Assembly: GCF_006345805.1 (NCBI RefSeq)
Contig: NW_021823726.1
Location: 1-21,037 of the forward strand
DNA length: 21,037 nt
Origin: Octopus sinensis
Taxonomy: Eukaryota
Reading direction: 5' to 3'
Shown: in pieces, positions 2,584 through 21,037 of the stretch
How the letters are laid out: the number at the start of each line of letters is the position of its first letter
How positions within the stretch are numbered: the first letter of the stretch is position 1
Notes under the pieces: generated by a model
Database searches by the model: none
Told to the model about the DNA's origin: nothing
The model's input: the letters and a program-made list of their open reading frames with translations, nothing else
Position numbers and translations under genes: made by a program

Positions 2584-2660
2584 GGGTAATAAGAATCATA
2601 GAATTTTTTTTTCCAGTGGCCTAGCGCAAAAAAGTTTAGTCAATAGACTATATATATTCA

Positions 2661-3325
2661 TATAAAATATGGTGTACATTAAAACACATTAAGAGGTTTC
2701 CATCATAGGAAAGCCTTACGCTAGAAAAAACAGTTAAAAATTCAAACCCCTAATTAGGGATAAATTCTCGAAGGGAATGAAAAGTAAAAATATTTACCAT
2801 CTAATTTAATTCCTAGATCATGGTTTCTGACTTATTTCAGTAAAAAAAAGATTTACTGAGGCCATCATCTTCAATGGGTAACCTTAGATTTTAAATATAC
2901 ACACAACGCGATCGATTCCGCATGTAAACGCATTGTTTGTATATTCTAACTTTTCAAAACCACTGCGCAGTCGCAGTCTATTTTCGGCAACCTCGAACAA
3001 ATTTATCAAAAATCATTTAAACATAATAAATAATATTATGTGTGTATATTTATAATATACTATTATGTGTGTATTATAATAATATTATGTGCATTTATTA
3101 AAAATCTAATATATGATGAAGACGGCCTCAGTAAATCTTTTTTTACTGAAATAAGTCAGAAACCATGGTCTGGGAATTAAATTAGATGATAAATGTTTTT
3201 ACTTTTCATTCCCTTCGAGAATTTATCCCTAATTAGGGGTTTGAATTTTTAACTGTTCTTTCTAGCGCAAGGCTGTTCTATGATGGAAACCTCTGAATGT
3301 ATTTTAATGTATACGATATTTTATA
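2661..3325. mobile_element. Fold-back / long-TIR element: ~205-bp inverted arms (2661-2866 and 3119-3325) around an AT-rich spacer
   Basis: The arms are reverse complements with roughly a dozen differences by eye (~93-94% identity). Each contains the palindrome CCCTAATTAGGG and a TCAGTAAA...TTTACTGA hairpin. Confidence 0.75.
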
Positions 3326-3344
3326 TATATTAATTCGTCCTTAG

Positions 3345-3734: not shown

Positions 3735-3817
<83 letters not shown>
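3735..3817. repeat. (TA)n then (TG)n microsatellite
   Basis: Directly visible. Confidence 0.95.
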
Positions 3818-4367: not shown

Positions 4368-4745
4368 AACCACATGGCTCCAGGTTCAGTCCCACTGCAT
4401 ATCACCTTGGGAAAGTGTCTTCTACTATAGCCACGGGCCGACCAAAGCCTTGTGAGTGGATTTGGTAGACGGAAACTGAAAGAAGCCTGTCGTATATGTG
4501 TATGTGTGTGTATGCGTGTATGTGTGTTTGTATGTGTTTGTGTGTGTGTCTGTGTGTTTGTCCCCCCAACATCTTGACAATCGATGCTGGTGTGTTTACA
4601 TCCCCGTAACTTAGAGGTTCGGCAAAAGACACTGATAGAATAAGTACTAGGCTTACAAAGAACAAGTCCTGGTGTCGATTTGCTTGACTAAAGGTAGTGT
4701 TCCAGCATGGCCGCAGTCAAATGCCTGAAACAAGTAAAAGAATAA
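4368..4745 (+). mobile_element. tRNA-derived SINE (family A), near full length with an internal (TA/TG)n tract
   Basis: B-box-like GGTTCAGTCCC, then CACCTTGGGAAAGTGTCTTCTACTATAGCC, the shared body, an internal microsatellite at ~4493-4560 and the shared 3' half. Confidence 0.9.
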
Positions 4746-5213
4746 TGGACTTCGGTATGCATAGACGGTTGTGTGTATATAGGTATATGTATGAGTGTGC
4801 GTATAAGTATACGTATGTGCGTGTGTGTTTGTGTATGTATATGTGTTCGGACTTGACAATTTTTAGAAACCGTTATGTTAATTGCACTTTCCTAGAAATG
4901 CTATAGAACATGCATTATTTATTATTCAAAATTCCACTAACCAATCGACTTCAACTGATCAATATCGATCCGCATCAATTTCTTCTTAGGATTGACGAAT
5001 AATAGAAGTGTAAATGTATTTATGTGTGTATATATATTTATGTATATGTATATATGTGTGCATTTATGTGTGTGCACGTATGTATATGTCAACGTGAATA
5101 TGGATTAATATATCTGTATATACATACATCAATACATAGGTGTGCATATACGTATGTATGATGATGCACGTGATGGTTTGTGCTTAAGTGTAAATCTACG
5201 TAAATAAATGTGA

Positions 5214-5918: not shown

Positions 5919-5956
<38 letters not shown>

Positions 5957-5960
<4 letters not shown>

Positions 5961-7184
5961 TGAATGGAGACAAGAAGTGGAACGAACCGACAAATCGAAA
6001 CGAACTGACGCGGGGCGCTGTCAGACAATATGTGATAATTAAAAATATATGCATACATACAAACTATATGTACGTACCTACATCTACATGTATATATACA
6101 TGCATATATAAATAAATATACGTAAGTACAGGACGCCACAACAAGACGTAGAAATGGGAAAAACAAAAATTTAACGACAAGTACAGGACAGGCTACACAA
6201 GGAAAAATCCAAAAATATTTTTACAAGAAAACAAGTACAGGACAAGCTACACAAGGAAAAATCCACCGTCATCAGCTGTCGCTAGTTAACTCAGGCGTGT
6301 TTCGAAGGCAAGACAGGACACTCGTTAACTAGGCCTTCCTGCGAGAGAATTAAAATAAAATTCCAAGCTGCGGGGTAAAACATTATTGTCTGACAGCGCC
6401 CCGCGCCAGGTTCGTTTCGATTTGTCGGTTCGTTCCACTTCTTGTCCCCATTCAATTTTTATATAAATATTTAAGATGCGCAATTCTCTCCCTTTGCTTT
6501 ACCCTCTCCACTCTCGCTCCCTCTCACTCTTCCCCTTTTCTCTCTCTTAGCCGCGTGTCCCCCCTCCTTCCTTCTTTCTCACTCCCAGCTTAAAAACTTT
6601 CTCTCTTTCGCACGCTGCCTCTGCTACTGAAAAGTCTTGCTTCCCTACGCTGCCACACAACATCTTTCGTCTAGCCAAAAAAAGGCCTTTTTCGTCTGTT
6701 TGGTTTTTCTCATTTGTCCTCTTGTTTGTTTGATTTCCCGTATTGTATTCCCTTTTTATTTCTCGTCTTGTATTTTTTGTACATGTATTTTTATCTTGTA
6801 TTTTATTGTTACATCCTGTTTGTGTTCTTACCCGTTTTACCCCGCTGCTTGGAATTTTATTTTAATTCTCTCGCAGGAAGGCCTAGTTAACGAGTGTCCT
6901 GTCTTGCCTTCGAAACACGCCTGAGTTAACTAGCGACAGCTGATGACGGTGGATTTTTCCTTGTGTAGCATGTCCTGTACTTGTTTTCTTGTAAAAAATT
7001 TTTTGGATTTTTCCTTGTGTAGCCTGTCCTGTACTTGTCGTTAAATTTTTGTTTTTCCCATTTCTACGTCTTGTTGTGGCGTCCTGTACTTACGTATATT
7101 TATTTATATATGCATGTATATATACATGTAGATGTAGGTACGTACATATATGTTTGTATGTATGCATATATTTTTAATTATCAC

Positions 7185-7188
<4 letters not shown>
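5957..7188. mobile_element. Complex inverted duplication A-B-A'-C-B' involving an ~800-bp unit (6387-7185, TG...CA)
   Basis: A (5957-6030) is the reverse complement of A' (6384-6458), with ~3 differences. B (6028-6381) is the reverse complement of B' (6834-7188), with ~4 differences seen by eye. C (6459-6833) is single copy. Family unassigned. Confidence 0.85.

Positions 7189-7192
<4 letters not shown>

Positions 7193-7276
<84 letters not shown>
7193..7276. repeat. (TG)n microsatellite
   Basis: Directly visible, with one TGCG interruption. Confidence 0.95.
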
Positions 7277-7279
<3 letters not shown>

Positions 7280-7451
7280 GTGGACTCTCCCGTCGAAGAC
7301 GACATATTAGTTGTTGCCGATTGACCTGCACAAATAATTTGTTCATAGTGATCAAATGTTTGTGCCACACATTACCTTTCTCTCTCTCTCTCTCTCTTTC
7401 TCTCTTTCTCCATCAAATCGACGTTGTCGGAACAGGTGCACTGTGTACTAC

Positions 7452-7590
7452 ACGTCAGGTGTCAAAGTAATCGCAAAGCAACGTAAGATGAAGTGTTTTG
7501 CACAAGAACATAACGCTCCACCCACTCTAGGAATTGAAATCACGATCTAACGATCGCAACACCCTATCTGCTAGGCTATTCGCCCTCACC
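7452..7590 (-). mobile_element. tRNA-derived SINE head (family C variant)
   Basis: Reverse complement reads ...TAGCCTAGCAGATAGGGTGTTGCG...GATTTCAATTCCTAGAG...TGTTCTTGTGCAAAACACTTCATCTTACGTTGC, homologous to 1057-1180. Confidence 0.8.
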
Positions 7591-8344: not shown

Positions 8345-8496
8345 TTCAGTTTCAATTTCCGTCTGCCAAATCCACTCACAAGGCTTTGGTCAGCCCGAGG
8401 CTATAGTAGAAAACACTTGCCCAAGGTGCCACACAGTGAGACTGAACCCGGTAGCATGTGGTTGGGAAGCAAGCTTCTAAGCACACAGCCACGCCT
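8345..8496 (-). mobile_element. tRNA-derived SINE (family A), 5' half
   Basis: Minus strand has A-box-like TGGCTGTGTGCTTAG, B-box-like GGTTCAGTCTC, then GGCACCTTGGGCAAGTGTTTTCTACTATAGCCTCGGGCTGACCAAAGCC. Confidence 0.9.
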
Positions 8497-8946: not shown

Positions 8947-9256
8947 CTATCTATCTATCCGCTCAGTCGAAGTCAACTCTCGGTTACTCGTTGGATCAGT
9001 GTCCTCCAGTCAGTTCTATCCTGGACCGCTTCTTTCCGATTGGCTATGTCCATTCCGGTATCACTCTTGATGGTGTCAAGCCAGCGGGTTCTTGGTCGGC
9101 CTCTTCCTCTCTTGCCACTGACTATTCTGAGCATGATGTCCTTCTCCAAGGATTTTCTCTGTATGATATGACCGAAAAATGCCAATCTATGCTTGGTGAT
9201 CCTAGCTTCTAGCGACATTTGCGGCCTGATCTGCTTAAGAACTTCTCCATTGGTGA
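8947..9256 (-). mobile_element. RTE-clade (BovB-like) LINE 3' end, 5'-truncated, with a (TAGA)n tail
   Basis: EVLKQIRPQMSLEARITKHRLAFFGHIIQRKSLEKDIMLRIVSGKRGRGRPRTRWLDTIK...AVQDRTDWRTLIQRVTES is the typical RTE ORF C-terminus. It is followed by CGACTGAGCGG and a (ATAG)3 tail. Confidence 0.92.
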
Positions 9257-9469
9257 GCCTAAGTAAATTAAATGCCATCCGAGGTTTAAACCGTATAACC
9301 CTCGCTAACTGCTACGCTAAGAAGACATCAGAACTTTCCAAGTCCTAATTAGAAGACTTATATACGATTACATCTCCTAACTGCTTAACAGGGATCTCGG
9401 TCCACATACATTCGAGGTATTATACATAACTCTAATGTAGAATACTTAATGTGTATGCATGTATATATA

Positions 9470-9608: not shown

Positions 9609-10346
9609 GATCTTTTGTTTGGTTGCACCTGCGAAACTTTTGAAATTTAGTCAAAATTTTAAAATTTGATGTATTGACGCAATTGTCCATGCTGAATCAC
9701 GGGGACTAATTCACTTTTTTGAGAAAAAGCTATAAAAAAGTTACAGAGGTTTAAATTTTGATAATTTTACCCAGTCAGAAAACAAGATTTAGAAGCTGTT
9801 GTTTTGTGTGTAACAGTATGTATTGTCAACTGTAAACAAATGAAATAATGGCGGGATACTGCTTTACACACGACATATAACTCCACATAACTCTTTGTTT
9901 TTTTTCGAATTTTTAGAAAACTTTTGCGGATTTGTGTTCTGCACACAGGAATTCATAGGATTATGCAAAAACCAGAGCGAAAAATGTTTAGTCCGTGATT
10001 GAAGGTCTATTTAGCTATCATTTTTAGCACATCTCACGATCAACTCATGCCTTGTGTTTTAAGCATTTAATAAGTAAAAAATGAACGCGTTGCTTGACAG
10101 GACCACAACAGAGGAGTAAACAGCTAGGCAACAGCTTGGTTTATTACTATGGAAACAAGCACCTACATGGTTATGGCTTTCGATTGGCAAATTTGCAAAT
10201 TTTAAAAGCTGTTGACACTTTATTTATTGATTTATGGCGAAAATTAATTTCATGTCACTGATTACCATACAAAACTACATCAGAGTATCAGTTGGAACAA
10301 AAATTAAAGAAATTGAAAAGTGGCAGCTAAACAGAAAAGATACAAT

Positions 10347-10565
10347 ATATGTGTATGTGCGTGTGTGTGTGTCTGTGTCTGTGTGCCCCATCAATGCTAT
10401 GCAACCGGTACTGGTGTATTTACGTCCCAGTAACTTAGCCGCTCAGCAAAAAAGACCAATAGAATAAGTAGCGGGCTTTAAGAAAAGAAGTCTGAGGTCG
10501 ATTCATTCGACAAAATATTCAAGGCGATGCCCCAGCATGACCACAATCTGAAACAAATGATAAAA
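10347..10565 (+). mobile_element. SINE family A, 3' half (diverged)
   Basis: After a (TG)n tract: CCCCATCAATGC...GGTGTATTTACGTCCCAGTAACTTAG...CAAAAAAGACCAATAGAATAAGTA...CCAGCATGACC, matching 4560-4745. Confidence 0.8.
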
Positions 10566-11679: not shown

Positions 11680-12420
11680 CTCTTCATCACAGGTTTTGTT
11701 GGAGCTCTTGGAGTCTTGCATGCGCAGCGGCCTTACAACCTGCAGCCTACGGTACCATGCTATTCGTTCTTTTCAACTATCTAATACTTTCCTGATTATT
11801 CTGGCCGTGCCAAGGAAGCAAACCTTTTGTAACAGTTCTACTGGGCACTCTATTCAAATTTCCTTTATATTCCACATGATGCCTTCTGATATTGTTCCTA
11901 AGGACCCAACAATAATTGGCATTATCTTCGCCTTCTCCATTTTCCATAGCCGGACTATTTCGTACTTAAGAGGATTATATTTATCTACCTTTTCGCTTTC
12001 GTTCTTTACTGTTTGTAGGTCAAAGTGACATGCAACATCAACTATATAGCATATGTGGTGCACGTTGTCCACCACCACTAGGTCCGGTTGTTATGTTTTA
12101 ACACCTAATTTGTTTGGATTGGGAATTCCCAGAGGATTTTGCTAGTCTCCGACTCCGCCACTCTCTCCGGTTTGTGCTCATACCACGTCTTTCATTTCTC
12201 TAGCCCTCACTTTTCGCACGGTTTCCAATGTAGCACTTTCGCTACTTGATCATTTCGCCACAACCTGTAGTGGTTTGGGACAAGTCTAGGACTTGATATG
12301 CGCAATGGTTTCATCCACTCTATTGCAGATGCGGCTCAGCGGAGACACTTGCTCATTACTAAGGTTTACCCTCCAGTTTGTGGTCAAAGCTTGGTCTTGC
12401 GCTGCCAATATAGTGCTCCC
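11680..12420 (-). mobile_element. R4/Dong-clade non-LTR retrotransposon 3' fragment (zinc knuckle plus restriction-like endonuclease), decayed
   Basis: Across frames: ILAAQDQALTT...RICNRVDETIAHI (degenerate CCHC), WYEHKPERVAESETSKILWEFPIQT, PDLVVVD...IVDVA (PD..D), EKVDKYNPLKYEIVRLW, IIVGSLGTI, LQKVCFLGTARIIRKVLDS*. Then a short 3' UTR and a (TAA)n tail at ~11659-11679. Confidence 0.93.
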
Positions 12421-12451
12421 ATTATTATTATTATTGTTGTTATTATTATTG

Positions 12452-12490
<39 letters not shown>

Positions 12491-12512
12491 ATTAATTATT
12501 ATTATTATTATT
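12421..12512. repeat. (TTA)n / (TAA)n microsatellite with TTG interruptions
   Basis: Directly visible. Separates the Dong fragment from the 12513-13066 element. Confidence 0.95.
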
Positions 12513-13065
12513 GAGTGAGCGAGTAGAGCATGCCATCAAAGTGACACTGGGGTAAAATATACGAAGCCCAGTATACCATCATGACTACCCGTCTGATAAG
12601 GGTACACCAGGCACATGCATCACAACCATATGTGCGCGACATGGTGATCTCATATCAAGATAAACAGCACATGACCTTGCAGGTGGAGCCCAGTTAGAAT
12701 TTTCTTCAGATCGAGTAACCCATCCTGCTCAAAAGGTCCCTGAATAAGGGTTGTTTAAGGATGTTGAACGAAACACCCATGTTTCCAGAGGTGAATTATT
12801 CAAACCCCAAAGAATCCTTCTCAACACATGGCTATGATGCTCCCCCACTACTTCTGCTCGTGATCAGAGATGCACATATCGTCAGCCACTAAGGGACATG
12901 CTCAACTGGTTATGGTCAAACAACTGACAAGCAAATCTGTGGTATTGAGCAGAATATTTGCTGTAGCCCATCTTTTATACCAAGACAAAACAATGTACAT
13001 GATAACACTTCCAATCAGTTAAGATCAGAAGCCATGAGAGCCACTGCCTGGTACTGCACCAGGGC

Positions 13066-13066
<1 letters not shown>
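12513..13066. mobile_element. ~550-bp non-coding interspersed element bounded on both sides by (TTA)n
   Basis: A sharp-edged, higher-GC island with no ORF and no clear A/B box. I recall it as a high-copy octopus repeat, but that is unverified. Orientation and class are uncertain. Confidence 0.65.
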
Positions 13067-13106
<40 letters not shown>

Positions 13107-13155
13107 TATTATTATTATTATTGTTATTGTTGTTGTTGTTGTTGTTGTTGTTCTT

Positions 13156-13186
<31 letters not shown>

Positions 13187-13198
13187 TTATTATTATTA

Positions 13199-13239
<41 letters not shown>

Positions 13240-13279
13240 GTGTGTGTGTATATATGCGCGTATCTCTATCTATCTACTT

Positions 13280-13346
<67 letters not shown>

Positions 13347-13395
13347 CTGTCTGTCTGTCTGTCCATCCATCCATCCATCCATCTATCTATCTATA
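13067..13395. repeat. Compound microsatellite (TTA)-(TTG)-(TTC)-(TTA)-(TG)-(TATC)-(TGTC)-(TCCA)-(TATC)
   Basis: Directly visible successive blocks. Confidence 0.95.
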
Positions 13396-20534: not shown

Positions 20535-20636
20535 CACACCAACTTGTTTTTGTACGACCGTACCTGTGGTGTGTGTCACACTTACTTCAAAGAAAGAAGT
20601 GAGTCGCAAAGTGGGGGAGAGGAGGACAGAGAGGAA

Positions 20637-20762
20637 GTGAGAGAGAAAGAGAGAGTGAGAGAGAAAGAGAGAGTGAGAGAGAAAGAGAGAGTGAGAGAGA
20701 AAGAGAGAGTGAGAGAGAAAGAGAGAGTGAGAGAGAAAGAGAGAGTGAGAGAGAAAGAGAGA
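20637..20762. repeat. Perfect minisatellite, 7 x GTGAGAGAGAAAGAGAGA (18 bp)
   Basis: 126 bp equals 7 identical units. Confidence 0.95.
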
Positions 20763-20764
20763 GT

Positions 20765-21037
20765 GCTTATTTTATCCACTATAATCAAGTCTAGTCCTCT
20801 TGCTTCAATAGTATGGTCAGTCATTATGGTGAAGTCCCACAAGAACTTGTAATTCTCATTTTCTATCTCAGCTTTGTGTTCATACCACTTTTCTGTTGTT
20901 CTGAAACCACATACTCGACTAACATCCCAATGCACTCTTTTGCCTACACAGTCATATCTACGCTTGTGCTCCTTTTGTTTGCTAGTGTACTTGCACTGAA
21001 AATGTTCCCGATACTCTCGTCTCCTTTAGCAATAGAA
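20765..21037 (-). mobile_element. Second R4/Dong-clade fragment (post-knuckle to start of RLE), cut by the window edge
   Basis: DESIGNIFS...KEHKRRYDCVGKRVHWDVSRVCG...KWYEHKAEIENENYKFLWDFTIMTDHTIEARGLDLIIVDK matches R4 YKRRHD..HW..WYEH..ENE..KILWDF.IQTD..RPDI. Confidence 0.88.

Follow-up and report, generated by a model that had tools for sequence, protein, structure and literature searches.

Several families of Penelope-like elements (PLEs) have copies bounded by inverted pseudo-LTRs (pLTRs), one of which can carry an optional 3' extension, the 'tail', that continues into the following sequence (Arkhipova et al. 2013). The published length of this tail is 30-40 bp. Purified PLE protein cleaves and extends both DNA strands, favouring AT-rich DNA, and reverse transcription starts at two internal RNA sites, the interval between which corresponds to the tail; a multi-copy RNA has been proposed as the template (Frangieh et al. 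2024). PLEs of the Naiad type have (TA)n as their preferred target, contain no canonical hammerhead and occur in Octopus spp. (Craig et al. 2021). In the canonical PLE clades a hammerhead is found in the pLTR; it is absent in Naiad and Chlamys elements. Non-autonomous PLE derivatives are described from Chlamydomonas, where they form pLTRs and head-to-tail insertions.

Two further groups of retroelements are relevant for comparison. DIRS1-like elements have inverted terminal repeats together with two adjacent halves of an internal complementary region (ICR), which are complementary to the termini and overlap on a 3-bp circular junction. These elements begin and end with the same trinucleotide, and their published ICR halves measure 24-110 nt. 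Among LINEs, twin priming is a known route to inverted insertions, and template jumping is a known activity of non-LTR reverse transcriptases.

Here, a stretch of 21,037 nt from Octopus sinensis (the window) was analysed, in which a 1.23-kb block at 5958-7188 combines an inverted repeat with a tail-to-head junction. We give about an even chance to the reading of this block as a single complex PLE-type retrotransposition of a short, non-coding, non-autonomous element into (TA)n. The block is probably a fairly ordinary mobile-element scar, left by an event of a known kind.

Results

Architecture of the repeat block

Repeat finding, blastn and global alignment across the 21-kb window establish that the interleaved inverted repeat is real and that the block is laid out as A-B-A'-C-B' (Table 1). 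This bears out the order given in the preliminary description, and blastn and global alignments also confirm that, as stated there, A-B corresponds in reverse complement to the end of B' fused with the start of A'. In global alignment, B and the reverse complement of B' differ at 5 of 355 columns (one 1-nt indel, an adjacent TA/AT pair and two substitutions). A differs from the reverse complement of the A' interval 6385-6457 at 3 of 73 columns.

With the unit (6387-7188) as the blastn query and the whole window as the target, three matches were recovered: the unit itself; the B arm (6381-6028, reverse strand, unit positions 448-802, 98.6% over 355 nt); and the A arm (6027-5942, reverse strand, unit positions 1-87, 93.1% over 87 nt). 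The remainder is TA/TG low-complexity sequence. Repeat finding resolved inverted pairs at 6065-6381 / 6834-7150 (317 nt, 99%), at 6028-6064 / 7152-7188 (37 nt, perfect) and at 5942-6005 / 6410-6473 (64 nt, 94%). Chance is far too weak to yield a 355-nt match at 98.6%.

Table 1. Features of the repeat block and its flanks, as positions in the window
Feature	Position	Strand	Description
(TA)18 microsatellite	5922..5957		TRF, 18 copies, 100%; left flank, presumed left half of the target
A	5958..6029	-	The unit's first ~70 nt (A') in reverse complement, in direct continuation of B; may be read as a PLE-type 'tail'
A-B tail-to-head junction	6028-6029	-	Point at which B meets A
B	6028..6381	-	Inverted last 355 nt of the unit (448-802); putative 5'-truncated inverted copy or inverted pseudo-LTR
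ATTAT, head-to-head joint	6382..6386		ATT at 6382-6384 is filler, from sequence and alignment
A'	6387..6473	+	Start of the forward unit (TGTCTGACAG...), includes TATATAAATA at 6460-6469
C	6474..6833	+	Middle of the unit: single-copy in the window, CT-rich, non-coding; A' and C together would be the 'body'
B'	6834..7188	+	Last 355 nt of the forward unit (putative direct pseudo-LTR), terminus ...AATTATCACATAT
TATATATA then (TG)41	7186..7276		Right flank, presumed right half of the target microsatellite

At the A-B junction, 2 nt (AT, 6028-6029) belong to both homologies; with one indel allowed for, the shared stretch becomes ACAT(T)AT. A TAT had been placed between the unit end and the unit start as a piece of its own; it is shared sequence and not an insert, as the homologies overlap there. 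On the outer side, the A homology fades into TA-rich sequence and (TA)18 between 5958 and 5942, and to the left of (TA)18 no unit homology was detected, the alignment score being at shuffle level. On the inner side, only the 3-nt ATT lies between the B end and sequence that can be attributed to the unit. The AT that follows (6385-6386) corresponds to the last 2 nt of the unit as read in the A-B junction.

A 35-nt motif, TGGATTTTTCCTTGTGTAGCNTGTCCTGTACTTGT, is doubled at 54-nt spacing in B' (6950-6984, 7004-7038), and the doubling is also present in the B arm (6177-6265). This doubling inside the unit is older than the inverted copy.

Ends and content of the unit

The unit spans 802 bp (6387-7188, TGTCTG...CACATAT), and its forward copy starts and stops at the period point marked by the A-B junction. 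If the junction point is a natural end, only two arbitrary breakpoints are left, at unit position 448 and at about 87. Any other phase needs an unexplained coincidence, and the 802-bp TGTCTG...CACATAT unit is therefore accepted. The proposed TGT...ACA termini are present (TGTCTG...ATCACA), as is the proposed TATA-like motif with its pyrimidine tract, in the form of TATATAAATA followed by a CT-rich tract. Within the 21-kb window, blastn detected no further copies of the unit.

The longest ORF in the unit encodes 95 aa, and this ORF returned no exact look-up match and no protein-search match. Neither the ORFs in and around the block nor the larger ORFs elsewhere in the window had a Pfam match above threshold. 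The Pfam searches of window ORFs found neither PLE reverse transcriptase nor GIY-YIG remnants close to the block, and no ORF for a tyrosine recombinase, RT/RNase H or methyltransferase. DNA patterns from the unit start and the B' repeat had no match in metagenome and prokaryotic-genome contigs, the unit-start pattern had no match in viral contigs, and a literature k-mer search had no match.

At the RNA level, no Rfam family reached its gathering score anywhere in the window. Between 5700 and 7500, no hammerhead or other ribozyme was recovered at Rfam E<=10, and the hits there were low-complexity miRNA-like noise only. A CTGATGA at 6933 is single and has no GAAA downstream. No tRNA was found in the window, and no tRNA-like SINE head or pol III promoter was found on the unit. 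A TA-rich imperfect hairpin is located at about 7098-7170, near the 3' end of the unit; the weak mir-297 hits on this region, far under the gathering score, stem from its low complexity. When the junction and the whole unit were folded as RNA, z was about -1.7, which is not significant.

The presumed target site

The (TG)41 tract of the right flank corresponds to the TRF row 7194-7276, with a regex match at 7186-7224, and the first TAT of this flank overlaps the unit end. When 5958-7188 is removed in silico, a continuous (TA)~21(TG)41 tract results. Like compound (TA)n(TG)n tracts occur twice more in the window, at 1239-1269 and 3769-3817. The simplest reading of this arrangement is that the whole 1.23 kb would have entered one TA tract as a single piece. 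The flanking microsatellites could also be independent of each other, since the window holds 16 TA runs of at least 6 units. No 4-6-bp target-site duplication is seen between the flanks (ATTAT on the left versus TATAT on the right), and TA-rich flanks would mask any such duplication.

Other repeats in the window

The window is AT-rich and dense in microsatellites, with 57 tandem-repeat rows, and its ORFs do not exceed 154 aa. A second long inverted repeat has arms at 2660-2873 and 3114-3326 (214 nt, 92.5%) separated by a 240-nt spacer, which holds a 22-27-nt TA/TG-rich tandem repeat; a (TA)39 tract lies 80 nt away. This repeat, 2660-3326, looks like a long-TIR MITE or a foldback element, and is possibly an inverted-pLTR insertion that has no body.

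SINE-like repeats are found at 1439-1721, 4368-4748, 8350-8463 (reverse) and 10344-10503, and a second family at 1057-1183 and 7449-7579 (reverse). Copies are 70-89% identical and have internal (TA)n(TG)n tracts. We take the repeats at the first four of these positions to be like an abundant octopus SINE.

ORF remnants at 8976-9311 (-), 11857-12090 (-) and 20585-21025 (-) resemble the C-terminal tails of LINE-type proteins and contain no Pfam domain; the first of these has 16 database relatives, the best at 65% identity. An 18-nt tandem repeat, AGTGAGAGAGAAAGAGAG, is present in 7.2 copies at 100% identity within a LINE-like ORF remnant (20636-20765). Dense microsatellites occupy 12421-13394, where (ATT)30 and a (TTA)57 grading into (GTT)n and (CTT)n are followed by (TCTA)33. 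This run is complementary to (AGAT)n arrays at 1741-1867 and 2212-2327.

Discussion

Comparison with Penelope-like elements

The option of Penelope tandem or inverted pseudo-LTRs, one of four mechanisms raised, with no choice made between them, when the locus was first described, agrees part for part with the published layout. As in Pen2a_Av and Pen5/6_Av of Adineta vaga and in the invertebrate Naiad clade, a body lies between inverted copies of the 3' part. As in PLEs with a tail, one inverted arm extends past the pLTR and so contains a head-to-tail junction; here, A-B is the unit end plus the unit start in reverse complement, the two overlapping by 2 nt. A further PLE trait is a 5'-truncated inverted copy that adjoins a 5' end: B ends at 6381 and adjoins the 5' end of the forward unit at 6385/6387. 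The AT-rich or (TA)n target of PLEs is represented by the left-hand (TA)18 and the right-hand TATATATA(TG)41, and the block resembles Naiads in being without a canonical hammerhead. A matches a PLE tail in its position and in its sequence relation, yet is ~70-87 nt long as compared to the published 30-40.

Other features depart from PLEs. An ORF for reverse transcriptase and GIY-YIG, which PLEs possess, is absent from the unit and from the surroundings of the block, and the unit in its entirety measures just 802 bp. With no such ORF, the copy would have to be a non-autonomous passenger. Upstream of the forward copy there is no direct pLTR, and the copy ends no more than 2 nt from a complete period; the PLE model accounts for this end only ad hoc, by a roadblock at the initiation site or by the RNA 5' end.

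Short, non-coding units like that of the block are known from non-autonomous PLE derivatives, namely MRC1 and its relatives in Chlamydomonas and the animal hammerhead 'retrozymes'. Both MRC1-type derivatives and retrozymes have head-to-tail junctions and pLTR-like repeats, and both rely on a PLE in trans. The comparison with MRC1, from an alga, concerns the described layout only. Retrozymes carry hammerhead ribozymes and usually have shorter tandem units, whereas no hammerhead was found in the block.

A possible route to the block

If the insertion was of the PLE type, B and B' would be inverted pseudo-LTRs, each made up of the 3' 355 nt of the unit, and A' together with C would be the non-coding body. 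A would then be the optional 'tail', produced where the pseudo-LTR runs on into the next sequence of a tandem or read-through template.

The reaction would likely involve: nicking of both strands of the AT-rich target by a PLE reverse transcriptase/GIY-YIG endonuclease acting in trans; cDNA synthesis primed from both nicked strands; and head-to-head joining of the two cDNAs, with ATT as the 3-nt filler. On one strand, synthesis would start at the unit end and produce the forward copy from one full unit. Synthesis on the opposite strand would begin on a multimeric RNA ~70-87 nt further downstream, or would follow a template jump. This second cDNA would copy the tail, cross the unit junction and halt after 355 nt of the previous unit; the inverted copy would be its product.

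The tail-to-head junction in one arm implies a template that was multimeric, circular or reached by a template jump, in keeping with the circular or tandem intermediate suggested at the outset. We infer the enzyme, the RNA template and the membership of the unit in a repeated family; the unit is known here from one locus.

Alternative explanations

The same geometry could have been generated by a different enzyme, namely a LINE reverse transcriptase at work on a SINE-like 802-nt RNA by twin priming with end-to-end template jumps. We consider this origin unlikely. The first cDNA would copy the whole RNA. The second primer would be the top strand of (TA)n, annealing to the UA-rich unit positions 65-87, and the second cDNA would run to the RNA 5' end, jump to the 3' end of another copy and stop after 355 nt. 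As in L1-type twin priming, in which both target strands prime, the block contains an inverted 5' segment and a direct 3' segment with overlap; unlike L1-type insertions, it has no poly(A) and no visible target-site duplication, and its inverted segment crosses the unit junction. The outer end of the inverted arm lies exactly where TATATAAATA of the unit meets (TA)18 of the flank, which suggests microhomology priming, and a forward copy of one full unit is expected if the cDNA reached the 5' end of a monomer RNA. LINE-like ORF remnants do exist in the window (8976-9311), but the unit shares no 3'-end similarity with them and is without a LINE-type tail, a pol III promoter or a tRNA-like head. 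A head-to-tail junction combined with a head-to-head inversion and a (TA)n target is routine in PLEs but rare for LINEs.

It is also improbable that the block arose by host replication error (FoSTeS/MMBIR) with no transposition, the product of three strand or template switches at TA-rich or ACAT(T)AT microhomologies. The '802-bp unit' would then be the mere interval between two microhomology sites, and within the window 6387 and 7188 are indeed marked as 'ends' by this event alone. Microsatellite-dense DNA is prone to such events, and the joints have a suitable character, with 2-6 nt shared between A and B, a TA-rich outer breakpoint and a 3-nt filler between B and A'. However, three switches are required, one of which must join interval ends that lie exactly at borders between unique sequence and microsatellite. 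Moreover, the whole block acts like one insert within a (TA)n(TG)n tract, and its layout coincides part for part with a known transposon architecture.

A highly unlikely candidate is a non-coding element with a circular or multimeric intermediate that bears an inverted copy of its end-to-start junction in order to regenerate its termini. Such an element would follow a DIRS-like logic in miniature and with no ORF; its layout would be one that is described for no tyrosine-recombinase or PLE family.

Very little probability is given to a DIRS1-like or other tyrosine-recombinase element, in which A-B would be the internal complementary region, or in which a circle would have integrated at TAT. Part of the DIRS-type option in the preliminary description stands, namely its 3-nt detail: like DIRS1-like elements, the block has the same trinucleotide at both unit ends (TAT at 6384-6386 and 7186-7188), with one ATA at 6028-6030; in TA-rich DNA such agreement is weak evidence. 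Both unit termini have their complement in A-B, as expected of a sequence complementary to the joined end and start, and B and B' can be read as long inverted terminal repeats, with A as a left extension complementary to A'. The remainder of that option is not borne out. In contrast to DIRS1-like elements, the complementary part lies beyond the unit and exceeds known ICR halves 4-10 times in length (B has 355 nt, as compared to 24-110 nt), and the unit is without inverted terminal repeats. If the whole block is taken as the element, B and B' may serve as the inverted terminal repeats, but a single ICR half (A') results; the third copy of the outer end of B that is expected beside A' is absent, its score being at shuffle level. 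No coding capacity for a tyrosine recombinase, reverse transcriptase or methyltransferase was found. What defeats the DIRS1-like reading is the missing second half of the internal complementary region.

The LTR-like or LTR-circle interpretation is missing most LTR hallmarks, and a solo LTR (TGT...ACA) beside an inverted fragment of an LTR-LTR junction, derived from a 2-LTR circle or a tandem LTR, is hardly probable. An LTR would suit the TG...CA ends, the 802-bp length and the TATA-like motif with a pyrimidine-rich stretch after it, but the ATTAT and TATAT flanks give no 4-6-bp duplication, a microsatellite and not a PBS follows the unit, no clean PPT precedes it, and there is neither an internal region nor a second direct copy in the window that could make up a direct LTR pair. 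Junctions of circles are a dead end and seldom become fixed in chromosomes, and the inverted, truncated arm requires additional independent events.

It is most improbable that the block is an artefact of assembly, or that its structure is an unrelated one, for instance a long-TIR foldback DNA transposon (B...B') nested in a fragmentary relative: PLE-like tandem and inverted structures are known to upset assemblies, but missed-adapter chimeras give a simple palindrome, which the block is not, and the arm differences resemble real mutations; a long-TIR MITE-like element lies nearby (2660-3326) and TA flanks B...B' on both sides, but A would be left unexplained unless deletions occurred on both sides.

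Age and significance

The arms differ by about 1.4-4%, so that the event is recent but not brand-new. The recency earlier proposed from the high identity is retained to this extent, and gene conversion between the inverted arms could lower the apparent age. Transcription through the block would yield a 355-bp hairpin RNA, a possible source of small RNA.

If the block is a one-off replication error, it would be of local interest only. If the PLE reading is true, the block would be a compact example of the enigmatic Penelope-type integration, recording both-strand priming, two initiation sites and the unit junction in 1.2 kb. It would also show why such loci get mis-annotated as LTRs or as segmental inversions. 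In that case the passenger would be hammerhead-less and non-coding, and it could help to define the minimal cis sequences for a Naiad-type enzyme.
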